Positions 23,806-37,402 of a stretch of 64,000 bases of DNA are shown piece by piece; within the stretch, counting starts at the first letter, position 1; the number at the start of each line of letters is the position of its first letter. The DNA comes from Vitrella brassicaformis CCMP3155. Lineage: Eukaryota; Protista; Chromerida. Where the stretch lies: the NCBI GenBank assembly GCA_001179505.1, contig CDMY01000246.1, positions 86,265 to 150,264 on the forward strand, given 5' to 3'. Under the pieces are notes generated by a model. That model was not told the DNA's origin. It saw only the letters and a list, made by a program, of their open reading frames with translations, and did no database searches. A program made the position numbers and the translations under genes.

Positions 23806-26800
23806 TCACCTCCTCCCATGGTAGCTACCATCACGATACCCCCCATCCCTCTCCCACCCATCCCTCTGCCGATATCTCCGATCACGGTTACCGCGCAAAT
23901 CGCGGTCAGGTGTGTGGCGGCGCCTGACGTCACGGTCTTGCACGGGCTGCCGACAGGGCGGCGGGGCATAAAGCTCAATCGGCTCCTCCTGAACAACCAC
24001 AAGAGACAGACAGATGCATCCATAGAGGTGGATGGATGGCAGGCCTGATCTGTGTGTGTGTGTGTGTGTGTGTGTCTGTAGGTGATGAGTGCGACTGACC
24101 AGTCGTCGCAGCCGCTCTTCCTGGTCATCGCCTCCCCAGCTCGGGTGCTCATCAGGCCCGCCATAGTGAGAGCGGGTCTCCCGGTCCCGCGGCGCCCCTG
24201 CTGGCACATCCCTCCGGCCCCGTTCGCCCAGCTCAGGGTCGACCATGTCTCTTCCCGCTCTGCTCACGTTGGTGCGGGCCTCGTAGGTGTCCTCTGGTGG
24301 CCCGGGCTGATAGTCCTGCTGTGGATGGCGAACTTCATGCCGGCGTTCCGACGACCTGTGCGTATGTGCCGAGCGGGCCTCATTACTGCGGCGGGGAGGA
24401 GGGAGGAGGGGAGGGATTGGAGAGTAGGAGCTGGAGGGAGAGTCATCGCTGTCCTGGTTGGGGGGAGACTCGATGAGGCTGAGAGTGCGGTCGACCATGC
24501 CGAGCATGGCATTCAGCTTGTGGATTTGCTCAACAACAGCCGAGTTCTGCGGGCCCGATCTCAGGTTGCGCAACTGGTCCAATAGGAGCTCCCTGTGATA
24601 CGCTGTCTCCAGTGGCTGACTATCCTGACGCGAGTGACGAGAGAAAGACGAGCCCGCACTGTCGCGCCTGCCGAGGACAGGTGGTGGGTCAGGACGGTGG
24701 ATCGCAGGTGGGTCAAGCAGGGGGTTGGCGGGCCGCTCGCGATGGTCACTGCCACGGCTGGGGCGGGCATCACGATCGTCGTAGTAGTCACGGCTGCGCC
24801 GGTCTTGCTCGCGACGGTCCTCCACCCGACCACCTCCCATCCGATATTCGTCACCCGGCAGCTCACGGTTTCGATAACCAGCACGACGGCGATCCATCGG
24901 CTCGCGGGGCTGGTAGGGGGGGTCTCGGTCATAGCCCCTCTCCCTCACATCGTCCCGTCTGCTATTATCATGTCTGTCGTAGTCCCTCTCCCTCTCGTCT
25001 CGCCGCTCACGGTCCCGATCGCGATCGTGAGGCGACTCCCGCTGTCTCCTGCCATAGGCGCGGGTATCCTCGACTGGCCCCTGCTCCCTCCTCGCCTGCG
25101 CTCGTGTGTCCTCAGGTGGCATGTCACTCCGAGAAACGACGCTTCTCTCAGGCGACTCCCAGTCATGCCGTTGGCTGCCATGCGAGCGGAGGTAGAAGTG
25201 ATCGTGGCGGTCGTTGAGACGCCTCCCGTCTGCAGGACCTGGCTCACGGTCACGCTCGGGTGCACGTCGAGTGGCCGTCGGTCCGGTGGGTTGAGTCAGC
25301 TGGGCAGCAGCTCCCCGCTCCGCGACGACGGATACCGACTCCAGCTCATCGGTGTTGACGGCAGACGGCGGCCCCCCTTGTCCCTGAGCTGGCGGCGACG
25401 GCCCTTGGAAGGGCATCTCCGGCATCTCTCCCAAGTCTCGCACCTCGGGCATATCTCGCACCATCTGTGGCGCCGGCTCTCGCCCCACCGCGGCATTCGA
25501 GTAGACCTCCCACACATCGTCAAGAGACTCGTAGTTGGCCGTGCATGGAGCGGCGGGGCCAGCTGTGGGCTGGTCTGGCGACACACTGAGATAGCCGGCC
25601 GGAGGCGACGCCGCCATGTCGAAAGACGAAGGGGCCGGCCTGGCCTCGGCTTTCGCCTTCGGCTGTGGAGACGGTGAGGAGTCCAAGCCGCTTCCACCTG
25701 CCGCCGCAGACACACCTGCTGCACGACCCTGCTGGCCCAGGCTGTGCCGAACGATTCGCCGGGCAGCAGCCTGGTCAACGCGAATAATGAGGGGCGGGGT
25801 AGCCCGGCTGGCAGAGGGGACTGCCTTGGGTGCAGGAGAAGGGCCATTGTCTGGCGCATCCTCAGACAATACCCGTGGCGGCAGGGGAGGCCTGCTGTTG
25901 CCGGGCGGCCCACGGGGGATGGGGGGACTTGGGGTCTGCTGCTCAAGAGAGAGGCGCTGCACCCTGTCGGAGAGGCGGTCACGCTCGAAGGCTGAACAGT
26001 AGGACCCAAACAGAGGGGCGGGAGAGCGCTCGGGCAGCTCTGATGTTAATTACCCCACACCAAGGAAGGCAAGCAATCCAAACCATCACCTAGGTGTGCG
26101 GCCAGCGTACCTTCATCAGGCTCGAACGCAGACATCGCCTCATCGTCGCGGATGCACTCAGACGGCGGGGGGCGAAAAGCGTTCGGGTTGTGCCGGTAGA
26201 AGTTCCTGTAGCGCTGCTTGAGCACCTTGAGCGAGTCACCGAAGAACACCCATGGGAACGACCGGAAGGTGTGCGAGCGATCTCCCGCCGTCGGCTCCGA
26301 CGTGTCGCTGGTGGAGCGGGGGATGTTGGCATCGACTCTGTGGGGTCGTGGATGATACGCTGCGATGAATGCCGCCGATGCGCGGACCAGCATGCGCTCA
26401 TTGGCCCGCTGCCGCTCCTCATCGCTGGCACCGATGTCGCCCCCGTCGTCGAAGAGTCGTCGCTTCGTTGCGTCCACCTCGGCCCGCAAGGCATACGAGA
26501 GCTGAGATTGAAGGCAGAGGAATGGTGTGGTGGACATGCAGTGGATTGAGGTACGTATTTGTGGGAGTTTGTGGCCATCTGACCTTGCTGGAGAGATCAC
26601 GGTCCTTCTTTTGTCTGCCGTGGACGTGTGTGATGCACCCGGTGAGCAGCTGCGGACAGAGAGACAGGGCGTCAATATTGGTGTAGTGTACCTATTGTAT
26701 CATGTGTTGTGTCGTGTTGTGTGGGGTAGGTACCTCGCTCTCTTCCGCGATGCCGTACTGCTGCATGAGGTGCACCACCTGACACAGACATGACACACAG

Positions 26801-29800
26801 ACATTCACCAAGCAGAGATGATGATGGTCAGCAAGTGAGGCTCTCCATCCGTCCCGCATGCCTGCCTGCCTGCCTGCCTGGATGGATGGATGGATGCCCA
26901 CCTTTTGCCTCCATCGGTTGCATTCCATGCGCATCTCATCCACATGGTCCATGGCGTCCTTGTGCAGCACGTCGGGGTCGACCACACCCGGCGGCATCGG
27001 CTCATTCTCCGGCCAACGCCACTCATCCGCGTCCGCATCCGCATCATCCTCCTGATCGCCCTCATCACCCCCACCTCCCAAAGCATCGGTCTGTGGCCTG
27101 TCAGGGCTCTCCGTGGCGGGCGGCGGCTGCTCGACTGTCTCGAAGAAGACGTCTCGCGGCATCCGCATCTGCGCCCCATCCACATACACCATGGGGGTGT
27201 CGTCATCGTCATGCTCCTGCCGGCCACTCATCCGGGCACGAACTCGGTTCTTCATCCAGCTGACGATTGCTGCTGCAGACGGCTGGTCTCGCCGCAGCAG
27301 GTAAGTCGCTGGGCCAGCACAAGCGGCGGCTGCTGGTGGGTCAGGTATGGTTATGTCGGGTGTGGGGGTGGTGGCGTCGCGCTGCTCGGGAGGGGATGAC
27401 ATGGCCTCCGACGTGTTGTCGCTGACGTCAGCGTCACCCATCCGCCCAGCAGAGTCGTCGGGGGTGCGTTGCGACAGGCTGTTGCTACTGGGAGCGCTCG
27501 AGACGTGGGAGGGTCGTTGGGTGCGCGTGGGCGGCCGCGGTGGAGGTCGGCGGCGTGTGAGGGGTGTGGGGCGCTTGACGTAGAAGTCGGTTACTTGGTA
27601 GAGCTCGCAGAAGAAGAGGGACGCCTGGAGGCTGGTGAATCGGACGTCGTATACGTGACGCTGGTCGCTGGCCTCTGGCTGGAACGGCGTGATGGCGGGA
27701 CGCCTGATGGGCGCACACAATAGGGTGAGGTGACAGAGGGGCGGGCGCAGTGGTTGTGGGTGGATATGTCGCTTACCCTCCCAGGGATGACCGCTGGTCG
27801 GTTCTCCGTCGGTCGATGCCGCTGATGGGCGTGTGCTCCCGCGTGATGCCGTGCAGGTGCAGGTATCGCGTCAGTGTCCTCCGCAACTCGTCCTGAGATC
27901 GCAATACAGACCACAAGCGCACACGTCCCCTTCTACTCGCCGCTGTAGCGTGTTGCCCACGCACCTTGTCGAGGGAGCAGTGTTCGACGGTGACGGCGAA
28001 TGTTTTGTTGTAGAAGTGCTCCATCTGGGAGATGGCGTCGAAGAAGAAACTACGGCTGTCAGAATCTGCATAACCACACACCACACCGGGGAGGGGATCA
28101 GCACCCCTCTCTGTCATTGGCATGAATGTGTGCACACCTGTGGATGTTCGCGGGGCGCCCCGTGCGTCTGTGGGCTCCTTGACGTCGAAGGCCTGCAGGG
28201 TCTTCTCGTCGGCTGTGGCGTCCGACCTGGCTTTGAGCTCGCTCCAGCACACGTCGAAGCACGCCGCTGCCTTGACCGTCTGCGCACACACATCCACACA
28301 CACATCCATCCATCCACCCTCAGGGGTGCACTAATGGCGTCAAATTCGTTCATCCATATGTGTTTGTGTGTGTGTGTGTGTGTGTCTTGACCTGGAAAAG
28401 GATATCGAGGTAGGACTGGTTTGGCCCTGCCCGTCTGATGAGGAGGTCGACGAAGGCCAGATCCTTCGACCTGATCCACTTGACGATCAGCCGCAGCTGC
28501 TCGCACAGCCGGGCACGGTTGAAGCCATCCTCTGACATACATGACGCACACAAACCAACAAAGGGAAATCCATGGATAAAGGATAAAGGGCAGTGGGTGA
28601 GGTGCACCGCTAGGCCTACCGGGAGCCAGGGGTGTGATGCGCCTGACGCGGCCGATGTCGGGGCCGCCGACCAAGTCCTTGTCGAAGTTCTTGCTGTTCT
28701 TCTCACGCATCAGGCACGTGCCGTAGCTCTTGATCAGCGAATCCTCCTCTGCACCACACACACACACACACACACGGCCACATACAAAGGGCAGCGGTTG
28801 ACACGTGTGTCCGTCTGCGTGCGTGTTTGTGCCGACCGCCCGACTGACCAAGTGAGACACGGACAGTGGCCTTTCTGCCAGTGCTCTTCCACTTGATTTG
28901 CAGCTTCCCTCCTGGGATCCGCCTGATGAGCTCCGCAGCCACCTCGGGGCTGCTCACGGGCACCTGCGCCGACCAGCACTCCGACACATGACCCGGCGAC
29001 ACCTCCCGGGGGTACCCCCAGCACCTCTGCAAGCGACCAACCAGCCATGTGTCGGTGGGGTGTTTGTGCGGCTGCCCTGCCATCCAGCCAGCGACTGACC
29101 GTGACTTGGTGTGTGGGTATGATGTTGTCTCCGCGGTTGAGGGGCAGGTCGAGTTTGCGGCGGAATTCTTTCTCGAGAATCTCCTCCAGCACAATGGGCC
29201 CGTTGTCGACGGGGATGTGGGACACAAACAGGTGGTCGCGCTGACCTGATTGGCGAACACACAAGCATACACACACAGGGGGGCCAGAGGGTCGGGTGAG
29301 GTGGTGTGCTGTGCTTACGGTCGCATGCTTCTGCATGTCGAAACTCGTCCTCCACAGCGATCTGCAAGGGCTCGCTCGCCACCGACGTGTCGCTGAGACC
29401 CCCCTCGCGAAGCCACACCTGAAGGAAAGGCATACAAAGCCGACTGCCACCTGTCTGTTTGTGTGTGTGTGTGTGTTGGTGCGATGGATCCGCAGCTACC
29501 TGCACTTGGAACTGGACGGTCTCCATCGTCAGAGGGATGGACAGCTCCTCTCGCGCGTCGCTTCTGCGTGTGTTGTACACGAGCTCTTCGAACGGCGCGT
29601 TGCACTGGTAGAGGTTGCTGAACATGTGGCTGTTGCTGGGGTGCCGGGGGTGCTGGCCGTCGATGAGCCCCCTGATGAGGATGCGGTGCCCCACCGCCCT
29701 CTGGGCAAGCCCGAAAGGGATCCGCCAGCTCAGCAGCACACCTCTCGCCACCGGCCGCTGGGTCGCCGGGTCGCGGACCAGCCATGGCTCTGGCGCCACC

Positions 29801-32800
29801 TCTGGCCGCACCGGACGGTGGCCTGCAGTTCACACGACAGACACACAGAAATGCTGGTTGGCTGCTTGGGTCGCTGGTTGGTGTCGTGTTTGTGTGCTGA
29901 CTGACCGGCGTCACTGATGGCGTTGTCGACTGTGTCAGCGAGGTAGAGCATCTCGCGGTATATCTCGCCGCACACCGAGATGCTGGGGAAGACGCGGCCC
30001 CGCTCCCAGTGGATCGGCTCGGCCAAAAAGTCGGCGCGGTCCTTGGCCGTCCACTCGACCGGCAGCTTCACACACCGACCTGTTTTGGCGCTGTCGACGG
30101 CCTCTGCGTGCAGGGCGGCGAGGCGAAGGCAGGCGGGATCGTTGGCCTGGCGCGACAAGGACACAGAGAGACATGCACGAGGGTGCTGAGTGTGGGCGGA
30201 CCCGCCTGCCCGCCCGCCTGGTCACCTTGAGCTCGGCGTATATCTGGGGTTGGTAGACCATGTTGAGCCAGGCCACAGCTATCTTACCCAGGTTGTCGCT
30301 GCAGAAGTAATTGATGAAATACTCCTACACACACACAGTGTCACCAACACATCCATCCATCGATCCATCCACCCACCCATGCGCCCACTTGCCTTGAGCA
30401 GCCTCTGTCTCTCGGCGGGGTTCTCAAGTGGGTTGTCGTCCCGCCCCGCCGCCCTCCCCTTCGGCCGCGGCTTGTAGTACTCCGCACCAGGGGGATTGGG
30501 CGTCGGCGGAATCAGGCGTTGGTCCCATATCACGTGGTACTGGTCACCTGACAGACACAAAGAGAGACGGAGAGAGAGCGATGCATCGGTGTGTCGGTCG
30601 CGCACCATCGAGGTCTGATCCGCTGAGCTCGTTTGGGTGCGGCCGCGAGCCCTTGACGGGGAAGACTATGACGTTGACGCAGTGTCGCAGCTCAGGTCTG
30701 TCGACCGCCTCGAAGACGCGTGTGTCGCCGGGGTCGAAGCAGGGGTTCTTGGACACATTCACCCTCCCTGATGACAGACAGACAGACACAGTGGACCATT
30801 ACACAGACAGGTGCATCTGTGGGGTGTTGATTGTCCTCTCCCCCCCCTCCCCGCCCTCCACACACACACACCCCGACCGACCTGTGATGGTGTGTTCGTG
30901 TCCGTCTGGGTCCTTGACCCTCACGTGCACCTGCCCCTCCTCCAGTACTCGAGCCTCGCTCTCGTCAGACACACCATGCAGCACCGCACCTTGCTGTCTC
31001 ACACAGACAGACAGCCAGACATCACCAAGCCCACGTAGCTGGCTGGATGGCTGTGGGTGCATGGGGCTGGCTGGCTGGGTGGCTGTGTGTGTGTGTATGT
31101 TGGCGCCTTACCTCTACGTATAGGTGTGTCTTTGCGAGGATGTCCTTGACGGTGAACCGGCGGATCTCGCTGAGGCACGCGCGCAGGAAGGGCTCGTCGC
31201 TCACGTTGAACCCCTGACGCAGAAAGTCCCCCAGCAGCGCCAAGAAGAAGTGATCGCGGCCGAGGTGAGCCAGCATACGCAGCGCCGCACCTGACACATG
31301 ACACATGACACATGACACAGGGGAGGGAAGAGAATGCCAGCCATTGTGTGGCTGGGTCGGTGGGTGTGGGGTGCGCTGTCTACCGTTGTCGTCAAGCGCC
31401 TGTCGGATGTCTGTGAGCATCTCGTCTTTGAGTTGGTGGAAGACCTCTGGCTTGACGGCTCGGGTGAGGAGCAGCGTGATAACCTCCCTGTTGAGATGGA
31501 GGGGGATGAACCGCGCGTGGTCACAAGTCTCCAATTGCTGATGGGCGGAACGGTGGGACAGCACGAAAGCGAGCGTCTCCATGTGTGTGTGAGGGCGTGT
31601 GTGGTTGTGCCTACGTCATGGTGGGCTTTGAACTTCAGCTGAGACTGCCGGACCGCCATGCGGACACTGAACCACCGGGAAACAGCCCACTCAATGAAGG
31701 GACGGTGCCCCCTCACACACACACAGAGGTGTGGCTTACGGCTCTGGGTGTTTCTGCCTGAAGGAGGGGTCGAGTACGATCATGCCCTTGACACCGTTGA
31801 ACCGAATCTGACGAACACAGAACACCACACCAGGCCAAGGGGACACTTATGACGTGACGGACGATGTGCGGCAGGTAGGTACACACCTGGAAGGCGCAGG
31901 GCACATAGTCGATCTTGAGCTCCGTCGCCACCTCCTTGGCAACACTCCTGTCGCAATACCCACACCCATCTGACACAGCCAAAGCCAAGAAGTCAGGAGG
32001 GGTCATCCATCCACTCATCCACCCCGCAACGGACCGGTAAATTCGTAGTCTCCTCTGTCTGGGTCGTCTGGGTCGATGGGCGCGGTGATGTCCTTCTCGA
32101 CTACCCACTCCTCTGGCGCGATCCTGATGGCCTGGCGGGTGGCGCTGAAGCACTGACCCTGACGCGCCGCATACTTGCCTGCAGGTGGGGGTGGGTGACG
32201 CACACACACACACAGATGGGTGGGCCAGTCGTATGTGTGTGTATGTTTACGGCCAGACCAGGCATGTCGATGCTCGTGAAGTCGCCCATGAAGGACTCGA
32301 TGTAGACGAACTCCAGCTGCTCATCTGAATCAACCACACACACACACACACGACCACATCCACCCAGCTGCTCGTGTGAGTGCTGGCTACCCCACCCCCC
32401 CATCCCACCATGCTCCTACCTGGCCTGAACATCCAGCAACCGCAGTTGCGCAACTGCGATGACGAGTAGGCCAGCAACTCATACGGCGGCAGACAGGCCA
32501 GGCTGATCCCTGAAGGAGCGAGAGAGGGAGGGAGGGAGGGAGGGACAACACCAGCACCTCGGACGCCCAACGTACCCCGTGTGGACATATTTCGAGAGTC
32601 TCTACCTACCGTCATCGAGTACCTTCTTCATCCGGTGCGTGACGACTTCGTCCAGCGACGCCTCGTAGAAGAGACGGTCACAGTCCTCCTCTGCAACGAG
32701 TGACGGGCAGCAACACAGGAGAGGGCCGTGAATGTGCGGCATCAGTTGTGTCTTTCCTGTTCGCCTCTGCTGACCGACGAACGCGACGCGAAGAAAGTTG

Positions 32801-35800
32801 TCGGTCTTGTCGCGGAACCGACGCAGCACACTGACGAGAAGACACACACATAGACACAGACAGGGAGTGTCTGTGTCTGTGTGTGGATGTGGCTATGTGT
32901 TGTGTTGTGTCGTGTTGCATACCGGTTGGACTGCTCGACGAAGGGCCCCCTGACGTACATCTTGAGTGGCGTGACGTCGACGTGCAGGATGCGCATGCAG
33001 TGCTCGGGGTAGTCCATGAGGGTGTGGACCAGGCCCAGTTGCCGCTGACCACGGGCCGCGATCCTCTCAAACTCTGAGAACCCGAAACACCACACACAGA
33101 CAAAGACAAGAGAGAGAGAGATGCAATACGCGCGTTGGTCTGTTTGTGGTGGCAGCCAGCAGACCTACTACCTTGTTTCGGGTTCATGATGGGCTGGCCG
33201 ATCTTCTCCATCGCCTGGTACAACACACAGACACACTCCATCCTCCCCTCCCTCCCATTTGTGCGTTGGGCGGTGGTGTGCCGACCGTCAGACAGTAGAT
33301 TTTGACCATGGGGTCGAGCTGGGCGGCCAGCAGGCAGTCGTTCACGAACGATGGGTCAAGCTGACCACACAATGAATGGCCACAGAAGGGATCGCATCCA
33401 TCCATCCATCCATTCCCCTCTCTCTTGAACACCGACCCACCGCATTGGAGCCCTGCAGCAGCCCTGCATGTATGACGCGCACAAACACAACAAACACCAG
33501 ACAATGATTGGTACAGGAGTCGGTGCGTGACGAATTGGTGCTCACCCACCGTTTGTGACCAGCACTTGGTATGAGGCGAAGAGCAGGAAGCCGTGCTCCC
33601 CACTCGTCAGCAGCTCCATCGACACACTACAAATCATCAACACACCACACCACAAACCCAACACACGTGTGTGTGGAGACGTGGCCGCCGAGCCGTTTAC
33701 TTGTCGTCCAGGCCACCGACCGGTCAATGCCCGTGAAGATGTCGTTGACGGATGGGATCTGCAGAGGGGGTGCGTCGGGCGGGAGGTCCTCCTGCTCGGC
33801 CCGCGGCAGAAAGGTGGGCCTGTCCTGGTGCAAGTGGACGTAGCGGATGTCCTCGTACGGACACGACGCAATCCCACCAGACCTGCAGGTGGGGTGGTGA
33901 ATGAGGGAACCGTGCGTGTCGTGTCGTGTCGTGCTGTGTTGGGTGCGGTCGGTGTGGTGTGGTGTGGTCGGTGCGGTGTATATGGCCGAGCGCAACTACC
34001 CGTTGTCGCTAGTGGGCAGCAGCCCTGCCTTCATGAGCGACGGTGCGATGTTCTGCTCGAAATGGGCCTGCAGCCATCCATCAAACACACACCGCACCAA
34101 GCATGTATGGATGCGTCTGTGTGTGTGTGGGGGGGTGTCAGGCGGGGTCTTCGTCTTACGTGTCGCTTGGGACAGACCACCGTGATGCACCACGAGGCCT
34201 CCAGGGCCTGACAAACACACACATTGCTGTGTGAGTCAAGGACCACAGGACTTTCTGTCTCCTTTTGCCCTGCCCACCGTGACGTCCTTGGTGCAGGGGT
34301 GGACCGTGACGCCGTCGCCCCACTTGCCACCTTTGCCCTTGCCCTTGCCCTTGCCGGCCGCTGGGTGGGCGTCGTCGCCCCAATCGCTCCCCCACACGCC
34401 GTCGTCGGGTCGGCCGCTCGGCCGTGAGGACGACGAAGAAGACGCCCCCATGTTGCCTCGGGGCTTCTTCGGGCCGCGTGTCTGGTCGAACCCACCCTAC
34501 ACACACGAACAGAGAGACAGTACGGGGCGTGTGTGGGAGTGTGGGAGGGTCTGTATGTGTGTTGTACCGGTGGCTGGTAGCCGTCGTGTCCTGTGGTGGT
34601 GGTGGTGGATATGATCCAGGGGTCGGTCATGCGGCTGAAGTCGACCCGGTTGTTGGGGCTCTCATCGGGGCGGTCCGACTCGTCCGGGCTGAGGTGGCGG
34701 AAGCCGTCGCCGACGTCACGATAGGACAACTGCACCGATCGCACCAATGGATAGAGGGACGGACACACGCACACAAGAGGTGTGTGGTGTGGCGTGGTGC
34801 GTGTGTGCGGGGTGGTACCTACCCTGGGTGCTCTCGAGAAGAGGATGACCAGGTGGATGTCGTCATCTTGGTCGGGGGCACTGGCAGGGACCAGGAGCAC
34901 ACGCAGCTGGACATGCTTGAAGGGCCACTCGAGCCGGTAGCACCGGTAGTCCTTGCTGACCACACATACACAGGGAAGGAAGAGGATCACAGCACCATCC
35001 ATCCATCCACTCATCCGGCGAGGATGTGTGTGTGCTGTGTCTGTGTGTCTCTGTGTCTGTGTGTCTGTGTGTCATGCTCACGTGAATGTTATCCGCAGCA
35101 TCCTCTGGGTGAGGAGGAAGAGGCAGCCGACCACGCCACGCGTCAAGGCGTCACAGTCCTCCTCATAGTCGTGCTGCACTAAGAGCGAATTCTGCACGCA
35201 CACACACACACACACACACATGGACGGCCAGCTGGACGGACGGATGAATGGATGGTTGGACAGCTGGACGGTGGTGTGCTTACGGCTTTCCGCAATTGTT
35301 TCAGCTCCTTGTACGTCTCTATAAGTTTTTCCTTGACCTGCGCACACACACCACACACCAGCCCACCAACTGCCCCCCTGCTACGACACACGCCCGCAGG
35401 TACTCAGTTGTCACTCAGTCACTGACCATGTTGCCGAAGTACAGCCGCGTGCCGAAGAGCGCCGTGGTCCGGTGGGAAGGCTTGGATGCGTCCAGGTCGA
35501 CCGACAGCATGGCCTGCAGCGGGCCCTCACGCTGGTGGGTCTCCTGGCAGGCGTGCTCTGCCCTGTCACGGCTGTAATACCGGATGACCGCCACGCCATC
35601 GCCCGACATCCAGATCCTGGCAGGCACCAAAAAAGCGTTCCAACTTCCCCTCCCTCTCTGCTCTGCGTGTGTGCGTGTGTGCGTGTGTGCGTGTGCGTCA
35701 TCCAAGAGAGTACTCACTCATCGACGAGTCCATGGTTCTCATAGGTCTGCCGCAACTCCCATGCCGTCGTCCGTGGGTTCAGCCCTTTGACCACCAACGT

Positions 35801-36109
35801 GCCGGAAGACTGCTCGAGGCCCTGCACACGTCAACAGGCAGCCAAGGGGCAGACAGAATATGGATGGAAATTGCCCTTCTCTCAGATCACAAATCAGTGT
35901 CGGTGTGCTCACCCACCTCATGCTCCTTGCGCCAGCTCGTCTGACAGGCTCTGCATGGGCCGCCCTTGACCAGAAACACAGATCCTGCATGACACAGAGA
36001 CGTCATGGTCCATGGCGCGCACACACACACACAGACGGGCATGAGGAGCATCCCATCCCGTAGGTGAGATCTCACCGTCGATGTCGGCGTACTCATGGTC
36101 CGCTGCCAT
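23806..36109 (-). CDS. RDR: Eukaryotic RNA-dependent RNA polymerase (RDR1/2/6-like, DLDGD) with large insertions and an Arg/Asp-rich tail
   Basis: ~35 exons. N-terminal RRM (TLVVKGLNP...), VTPLKMYVRGPFVEQSNRVLR...DNFLRVAF, YELLAYSSSQLR, MGDF...GKYAARQGQCFS, SDGCG, AFQVRFNGVKG, LNREVITLL, KNPCFDPGD, catalytic ELSGSDLDGDQYHVIWD (split by an intron at ~30548-30605), SDNLGKIA, LAALHAEAVDSAKTG, LMQQYGIAEESELLTG, RSFPW. Start MAADHEYADID at 36109; stop at 23806. Confidence 0.92.
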
Positions 36110-36642
36110 GATTCAATCAACCACAGAAGAGAACCAACATCTACTCATCAGTTCGACTACGGGGCAGCACGATGCAGTGACGGCTAGCTGAGGAGGCCCG
36201 TGTGCTGGCGTGCTTCTCTTCGGCTCACGAGAAAAACCCAAAAGCAGACGCGATCGCAGTTCAGTCGAGCTCGCAAATGCGATCTCAAAACCTCCAGGCT
36301 TTTTTTCGCGCCAGAGCTTCCAACGACGCACGAGATGATGATGCACAACAGCGAGAACACAGGTTCGTGGCGTGACGAGACGTGGTGACCCGCTGTCTGG
36401 CAAGATGGTCAAGTAGCCGCTCCCAAGCAGTGGGGGTGGCGGACAGCCGCAGCAGGGCGTGGAGATTTGTTCCCACGTCGCCGTCGAGAAGACAACGGCG
36501 TCAAGACACGTCATTCGGCGTTTCCGACTGCCAGCGGATCTGTGAGTGGTGGTGGTAACTGAGAGAGGCCACGTTGCCGTCCGTGTGCAGCACCCAGCGT
36601 CCCTCCCTCCCTCCCCTCCCTCCCCCCTGTGCGATATCCCGC

Positions 36643-37402
36643 ATGTCGATGGGCCTGAGCTTCTCGTCAGGGGAGGCCACAGGCGCCCACCTCGAGCAGC
36701 CAGCCGTCGGCCGAGTGACAGACGACATCCTCCCCTCCCCGCCTAACCACCTGACCAAGAACCACTCGACCCGCCCCCCGCTGTCCAACCATCGCAAGCA
36801 CCAGCACCTGCCCACCACACACGCGACCACCAACAACAACCACCGGCTGCTGCACACGTCGTCACGGTCACGCTCGAGGGCCATCCAGAACCGCCCTCTA
36901 CCCCCGTCGCGGCCTCTGCGTGCTCTGTCTGGCGAGATGTGCAACGGCGTGGGCGGTTCGTCGTGCTCGTCGGTGGGCGACGGGGTGTGTGAGGATGAGG
37001 AGCCGATATATTTCCTGTGGGACCTGGACGAGACTTTGATAACCTTCCAGTGTTTGCTGGCGGAGCAGCCGACGCTGAGGGAAAAATACGGCATCGAGAC
37101 CAACGCGGGCGCCATTAGGGGCAAAATTAACGCGGTGAGGACCACTCAAGCAACATGTGCACGGCACGGCACACGGAAAGGCACTGAATGGCCCCTCTCC
37201 TCTCTCTCTGTCTGTCTGTCTGTCTGTGTGGTGTCAGTATACGTTGAGTGAGTGTATTTTGAGCATAGCGGAACGTTACATGGGTCTGAGTGAGATCGAG
37301 CGGCTCGACCTCGTCCCGACAACCTGCCTGGAGTTCAGGGTGCGTTTGCACGCAACACACAGCCGGCCAATCGACACACACACAGCATAACATGAAATCG
37401 CG

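Follow-up and report, generated by a model that had tools for sequence, protein, structure and literature searches.

In a 64,000-nucleotide stretch of the Vitrella brassicaformis CCMP3155 genome (contig CDMY01000246.1, positions 86,265 to 150,264; hereafter the window), a minus-strand gene encodes an RNA-dependent RNA polymerase (RdRP), CEL96798.1, that carries a disordered loop with three Trp-Gly (WG) pairs. An earlier reading of the DNA letters (the original prediction) had proposed that these pairs constitute an Argonaute (Ago) hook by which the polymerase docks directly on Argonaute. On balance, we read the loop as a real, expressed and fast-evolving disordered spacer, in which the WG pairs are probably incidental and form no selected Argonaute-binding platform. 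It draws on the observed exon with its splicing and reading frame, on the predicted disorder and placement of the loop within the fold, and on a comparison of paralogs and a composition score.

The WG pairs are encoded by a transcribed exon of an RDR2-like polymerase

The WG stretch is exon 9 of a gene for an RDR2-like cellular RdRP, a real coding exon that is transcribed. Translated pieces of the intron-rich segment 23809-36109 (minus) matched the Pfam RdRP family PF05183, and a query with the catalytic exon against 1.84 billion representative proteins returned the 2754-residue CEL96798.1 (UniRef A0A0G4EIH3) of the same strain at 100% identity. A spliced contig of 1821 nucleotides (nt) from run X5, at a depth of 21.5, joins the pieces 34277-34495 and 34567-34729 directly, removing the 71-nt intron 34497-34567, and the resulting joint reads ...GHDGYQPP/GGFDQ.... 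The phase-consistent splicing assumed in the original prediction was thereby recovered, and exon 9 was found to be included in the annotated frame. This transcript support consists of one assembled contig rather than reads, from a library whose type is unrecorded and whose RNA origin was deduced from its spliced contigs.

The X5 contig stretches that were not seen (117, 293 and 172 nt) are compatible with a canonical GT-AG exon chain across the whole N-terminus. Constrained enumeration within 14 nt on either side of the expected boundaries gave, for the 293-nt stretch, a single GT-AG chain that kept an open frame and had the required length. Several chains were possible for the 117-nt stretch, for which the annotated one, whose following exon begins at 33882, was chosen, and the 172-nt stretch was consistent with annotated exons 2 and 3. 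The reconstructed N-terminal chain was identical to annotated CEL96798.1, residue for residue. Moreover, an independent DNA assembly from a different study (X2) spans 32958-35023 with zero differences. We also considered whether the insert could be a retained intron and ruled this out, as no GT donor follows DPWI and the exon is present in the transcript contig.

CEL96798.1 is an RDR2-like cellular RdRP, and every defining feature tested was present. RDR2 entries of the PDB matched the core with an E-value of about 1e-87 (phmmer), and the columns of D987, D989, G990 and D991 were invariant in an alignment of 45 RdRPs, indicating an intact DxDGD (metal A) motif. An AlphaFold2 model of residues 1-1151, built on this alignment, had a mean predicted local distance difference test (pLDDT) score of 81 and a predicted template modelling (TM) score, pTM, of 0.81. 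The model fits RDR2 structures from Arabidopsis and maize along essentially its entire length, with a Foldseek match to RDR2 7EU0_M at E = 1.5e-55 (TM 0.64/0.69, about 1187 columns). The PDB sequence search aligned residues 548-1144 only, so the mapping of the N-terminal region relies on the AlphaFold2 model, Foldseek and a MAFFT alignment. Beyond the core, the protein continues into a long region that ends in a disordered tail rich in Arg, Asp, Glu and Pro.

The insert is predicted to be disordered and splits a motif shared with plant RDRs

The insert comprises about 86 residues (residues 271-356), namely the last 15 codons of exon 8 together with exon 9. It is rich in Gly, Ser, Asp and Lys, with Gly accounting for 22%. 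The AlphaFold2 model assigned residues 274-355 a pLDDT of 28-37 and no secondary structure, in contrast to the flanks, which are near 90 and include the chain from residue 360 onward. W320, W324 and W344, each followed by Gly, all fall inside this predicted disordered segment. These results agree with the original prediction of a disordered Gly/Asp/Ser/Lys-rich insert with three WG pairs at 34317-34397, the pairs lying within 34317-34394.

The position of the insert was also essentially as predicted, that is, within a motif shared with plant RDRs (DPWIRTTDFT). Plant-like RDRs among the matches read ...DDPWIRTTDFTPSGAIGRC..., whereas the sequence in Vitrella is ...TDPWI-[about 86 aa]-TKDVTALEASWC. 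The model and the alignment to plant RDR2-like sequences place the insert after the DPWI strand, between two strands of a beta-barrel-like N-terminal domain. The plant linker at the equivalent place has 8-15 residues (DPWIRTTDFTPxxxIG). In RDR2, the beta-barrel-like domain comes after the RRM, and the RRM lies next to the template channel, which is positively charged (bioRxiv 10.1101/2021.08.31.458351). A Pfam search with the isolated exon 9 translation gave no match. In addition, an LC3-type W-x-x-[LIV] motif was considered for the insert and rejected, as it fits none of the three Trp.

The loop has diverged between paralogs

Vitrella encodes two further RdRPs of the same type, CEM03318.1 (2625 residues) and CEL96779.1 (1669 residues), the latter on the same contig as CEL96798.1. 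At the loop site, CEM03318.1 has a homologous exon of 222 nt, phase 0-0, that encodes KESKSSLLQQQQQQQQ...DDEDEDEEGAENENGECE...PRKSVT; its insert of about 95 residues is acidic and polyglutamine-bearing and has no Trp. CEL96779.1 has a 16-residue Gly linker, DPWKISDPRAFGGGQGGVRKGAT, encoded without an intron and likewise free of Trp. A lack of WG conservation, which the original prediction had listed among the findings that would speak against it, is thus seen at the paralog level, the only one open to comparison, as no Trp persists amid the drift of these loops. Because both long paralogs have an exon of the same phase (219/222 nt) at the same place, the loop exon is, judged from gene structure, older than the duplication that separated the CEL96798.1 gene from CEM03318.1. 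The two exon sequences have diverged beyond recognition save for their last residues.

As a separate observation, the loop exons of both long paralogs (34278-34496 in the window and L001 2660-2881) can be skipped without loss of frame, and they may be regulated cassette exons.

Relatives outside this group were sought with the N-terminal region. A word-index search with this region within the full protein returned CEL96798.1 itself alone, and the same type of search with residues 1-560 gave no match. A metagenome-contig scan with residues 200-470 yielded 110 pattern matches, none of which was confirmed by tblastn, and phmmer of residues 1-547 against 156 fetched RdRPs matched the Vitrella paralog sequences alone.

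The hook-like composition scores above the published threshold, with poor specificity

The Ago-hook score (dos) and its domain extension were re-implemented from the matrix published by Karlowski 2010, in which a domain is accepted at a dos of at least 6.99 half-bits and an ics of at most 2.14, and scores of 25-150 form the 'medium' class (PMC2910046). The loop scored 37.55 half-bits. By our own arithmetic from the distribution fitted by Karlowski, the P-value of such a score is roughly 1e-4 for each WG-containing protein of Arabidopsis. On the Ago-hook scoring called for by the original prediction, the loop exceeds the published dos threshold, but the score was matched at 35.7 by a probably non-coding, W/G/S-rich frame of the same window (WWSRVWWAGAGACDGWTAGGGSSGSWSGG; 36746-36832, minus), which lies outside the RdRP coding sequence. 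A six-frame scan of the window (106,022 residues) found eight domains above dos 20. Hook-like composition arises readily in this GC-rich DNA, and because a probably non-coding frame scores 35.7, the specificity of the score is poor here. The authors of the score themselves warned that its false positives come mainly from biased segments rich in Gly (PMC2910046).

The arrangement of the Trp residues was further evaluated by shuffling the 86-residue insert. All three Trp stood beside Gly in 6% of the shuffles, three WG pairs occurred in 0.9%, and adjacency together with the observed clustering occurred in 1.2%. Chance as the source of the WG pattern is excluded only modestly. The Trp residues are spaced by 4 and 20 residues, and a two-pocket span would be plausible for W324-W344 or W320-W344 only.

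The loop is probably a tolerated spacer

The hypervariability of the loop across paralogs, the absence of Trp from their loops, the microsatellites inside the insert, the weak shuffle statistics, the similar score of a probably non-coding frame and the warning about Gly-rich false positives all favor a tolerated spacer. Since the duplication, the loop sequence would have drifted essentially freely, partly through microsatellite expansion (GKGKGKGK, TTTTT, SSSSSS). The three WG Trp residues would then be a side effect of low-complexity, Gly-rich sequence in a genome rich in GC, yet they would still be chemically able to act as a minimal hook. We infer lack of constraint and lack of function of the loop.

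Several observations weigh against this reading. The dos is about fivefold the published threshold, falls in the 'medium' class and is the highest among 156 RdRP-family proteins, the runner-up having 17.5. Trp makes up 3.5% of the insert versus 1.2% of the whole protein, and Trp is usually depleted in disordered regions. The neighbors of the Trp residues are Asp, Gly and Ser, as in known hooks, with contexts of small and acidic character (DDGVWGSDWGDD and GGKWGDG). Moreover, the insert fits the requirements set out in a study of SGS3, namely Trp in a disordered region with a negative patch, acidic surroundings being needed (bioRxiv 10.1101/2025.10.18.683247). The protein is an RNA interference enzyme, which gives a hook a higher prior than in a random protein. 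No orthologs of the N-terminal region against which constraint could be gauged were found in the collections searched, and the absence of Trp from the paralogs could reflect sub-functionalisation instead of neutrality.

Alternative explanations

The loop could be a built-in Ago hook, although we consider this unlikely. The loop Trp residues would then insert into hydrophobic pockets in the PIWI domain of the organism's own Argonaute, W324 and W344 serving as the pair and W320 as an alternate. The flexible loop of ~80 residues, lying near the RRM and the template-entry side, would tether the RdRP to target-bound Argonaute; the targeted RNA would be copied into double-stranded RNA, and target recognition and small interfering RNA (siRNA) amplification would be coupled in one protein. 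The composition class, the acidic neighbors of Trp in a predicted disordered loop, and the placement of that loop (from the alignment to plant RDR2-like sequences) in the domain following an RRM that in RDR2 lies beside the template channel are all in line with such a tether, as are two additional GW-like motifs in the C-terminal tail. There is also a precedent, since RDR6-dependent amplification needs both the GW motifs of SGS3 and the AGO1 pockets (bioRxiv 10.1101/2025.10.18.683247). Against a hook, the loop has just three Trp, two of them 4 residues apart, in Gly-rich low-complexity sequence with microsatellites; neither paralog has a single Trp in its homologous loop; no orthologs were found that could show conservation; and a probably non-coding frame attains a similar score. 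Furthermore, a 2025 survey found three conserved Trp pockets only in metazoan AGOs, the pocket residues being variable beyond that clade, the PIWI clade included (PMC12477606). When the window was screened by regex for motifs of the PIWI domain, no nearby Argonaute gene turned up. It is equally unlikely that the Vitrella RdRP, through a hook of its own, is recruited directly by a target-bound Piwi-type Argonaute, with no adaptor of the SGS3, RITS or RDRC type.

A second alternative, also improbable in our view, is that the loop is functional through another linear motif or charge patch. Candidates are PKKPR or GKGKGKGKGGK, which could act as a nuclear-localisation signal or form an additional RNA-binding arm next to the RRM, a W-acidic motif that binds another partner, and a Ser-rich segment regulated by phosphorylation. 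Both PKKPR and the 11-residue Lys/Gly run lie inside the disordered loop, the loop belongs to the RRM-bearing N-terminal region, and the RRM of RDR2 binds RNA. Partner docking on the N-terminal domain of an RdRP is reported elsewhere, for RRF-3 with GTSF-1 (bioRxiv 10.64898/2025.12.23.696163). These motifs are short and common, however, and none of them is kept in the paralogs; the strongly acidic loop of CEM03318.1 even has the opposite charge.

It is very improbable that the WG stretch is an annotation or splicing artefact, normally skipped or read in another frame and so absent from the mature enzyme: skipping of a phase 0-0 exon preserves the frame, all three frames are open over exon 9 in this GC-rich DNA and only one assembled contig, obtained from one run, provides transcript support, but that spliced contig contains the exon with canonical GT-AG borders in the annotated frame, the annotation of CEM03318.1 has an exon of matching phase and similar size at this site, and the joint that skipping would create, linking the DPWI...ALEASWC strands by 15 residues, is possible but was not among the joints listed.

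Comparison with known RdRPs and Argonaute-binding proteins

The Vitrella protein resembles plant RDR2 and RDR-alpha-type RdRPs (PDB 7EU0, 7ROZ, 7W82) in the DLDGD motif, in the DPWI...T(K/T)D(V/F)T frame around the insert, and in the Foldseek and phmmer matches given above. It differs from them in the loop itself, where the plant proteins have 8-15 residues after DPWI, and in size, with 2754 residues versus about 1130, as its core is followed by a very large insertion and then a disordered tail. According to the SGS3 study, Trp is absent from the disordered regions of plant RDR6 (bioRxiv 10.1101/2025.10.18.683247).

The closest functional parallel is the SGS3-AGO1-RDR6 system of Arabidopsis, which shares disordered Trp residues in acidic surroundings and follows the same Argonaute-to-RdRP logic that the original prediction had proposed (bioRxiv 10.1101/2025.10.18.683247). 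In that system the hook is on a separate cofactor, is conserved in about 200 plant species and has genetic proof, whereas in Vitrella the candidate motifs lie on the polymerase itself and, by sequence comparison, are not kept in paralogs. The claim that direct coupling had not been described held in part: no paper on an RdRP with its own Ago hook was found in the literature searched, but coupling of Argonaute Trp pockets to RdRP amplification, through the cofactor SGS3, has been described in Arabidopsis (bioRxiv 10.1101/2025.10.18.683247).

Among canonical hook platforms, GW182/TNRC6, the C-terminal domain of NRPE1, SPT5L and Tas3 likewise have Trp flanked by Gly, Ser, Asp or Asn in low-complexity disordered sequence, and the Vitrella loop scores above the published threshold. 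Tetrahymena Wag1p and CnjBp provide an alveolate precedent, in which a Piwi-type Argonaute binds GW proteins. Canonical platforms usually have many Trp; domains in the Arabidopsis screen averaged 184 residues, and strong members exceeded 150 half-bits (PMC2910046), compared with three Trp in 46 residues and 37.6 half-bits in Vitrella. The nematode RRF-3/GTSF-1 pair is similar in that the N-terminal region of an RdRP is the docking site for a small-RNA partner. The contact there is reportedly a conserved N-terminal domain rather than a disordered Trp motif, and the partner is GTSF-1, not Argonaute (bioRxiv 10.64898/2025.12.23.696163).

A functional hook would be a new version of a known Argonaute-RdRP coupling. 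The recruitment of RdRPs to Argonaute-targeted RNAs is only partly understood, and lineages have arrived at different solutions: fission yeast uses RITS-RDRC, plants use SGS3 and SDE5 with RDR6, and nematodes use mutator foci. No coupling could be simpler than a hook built into the polymerase itself, and such a hook would offer an initial view of how siRNAs are amplified in the free-living relatives of apicomplexan parasites. Should the loop be drifting low-complexity sequence only, it would be a cautionary case in which WG counting over-predicts Ago hooks in Gly-rich, GC-rich proteomes.

Features of the gene and additional observations

Table 1. Positions of the RdRP gene, its exons and domains, and the sequence motifs discussed in the text (window coordinates)
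Feature	Position	Strand	Details
RdRP gene coding region	23809..36109	minus	47 exons, 2754 aa; exact spliced mapping of CEL96798.1 on the window
RRM, N-terminal	35529..35797	minus	aa 43-98; Pfam RRM_1 20.9 bits vs cut-off 20.7; RRM-like Foldseek matches of the model
Exon 8	34568..34729	minus	162 nt, phase 0; carries DPWI (34613-34624) and the insert's first 15 residues (ISTTTTTGHDGYQPP); X5 contig piece 34567-34729
Trinucleotide microsatellite	34593..34608	minus	Unit GTG on + strand, 5.3 copies; encodes TTTTT at insert start; Tandem Repeats Finder
Intron between exons 8 and 9	34497..34567	minus	71 nt, GT..AG; flanking pieces adjacent in X5 spliced contig (record positions 830/831)
Exon 9, WG exon	34278..34496	minus	219 nt, 73 codons, phase 0-0, aa 286-358 (GGFDQ...TKDVT); nearly all of the disordered insert
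PKKPR basic patch	34458..34472	minus	aa 294-298; resembles a short nuclear-localisation signal, judged from sequence
Candidate Ago-hook domain	34311..34448	minus	46 residues, aa 302-347; holds W320, W324, W344; dos 37.55 half-bits
W320-G321	34389..34394	minus	Context DDGVWGSD
W324-G325	34377..34382	minus	Context GSDWGDDA
Hexanucleotide microsatellite	34333..34355	minus	Unit TTGCCC on + strand, 3.8 copies; encodes GKGKGKGK; Tandem Repeats Finder
W344-G345	34317..34322	minus	Context GGKWGDGV
Exon 10	34160..34207	minus	48 nt, ALEASWCITVVCPKRH; ordered domain restarts; kept in both paralogs
RdRP core	29952..32975	minus	aa 557-1139; PF05183 E = 2.1e-146, 489.5 bits vs cut-off 23.8
Catalytic DLDGD	30543..30615	minus	aa 987-991; intron interrupts the motif
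SWGGDD	24124..24141	minus	aa 2681-2686, annotated C-terminal disordered tail; dos 8.4
DGWERDGG	23839..23862	minus	aa 2737-2744, near annotated C-terminus; dos 7.4

Exons 42-47 (window 23809-27703) are annotated to encode ~1100 mostly disordered residues past the insertion that follows the core, and this region contains the W-acidic motifs DADEWRWPENE, SWGGDD and DGWERDGG. The two long paralogs cannot be aligned in their C-terminal tails, and DGWERDGG was not matched to a GW in the paralog tail; therefore, the GW motifs of these tails are not homologous. At the other end of the gene, a short upstream open reading frame (ATGAGTAGATGTTGG...TGA) was found at 36120-36155 (minus) in the transcribed 5' leader, just ahead of the annotated start codon at 36109.

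Two observations concern the paralog on the same contig. Downstream of CEL96779.1, a separately called 955-residue product (L002 11120-12093) with the PF26253 RdRP_head domain begins 27 nt past the annotated end of the paralog, and the annotation has probably split one RdRP gene in two. Moreover, exon 17 of the CEL96798.1 gene (32923-33073, minus) and exon 15 of CEL96779.1 (L002 3637-3787) are identical at 147 of 151 nt, although their flanking introns have diverged and the whole proteins are ~54% identical. This near-identity, at the level of sequence comparison, suggests gene conversion or nucleotide-level constraint, and it accounts for three variant letters, at 32988, 33012 and 33039, in the aligned contigs.

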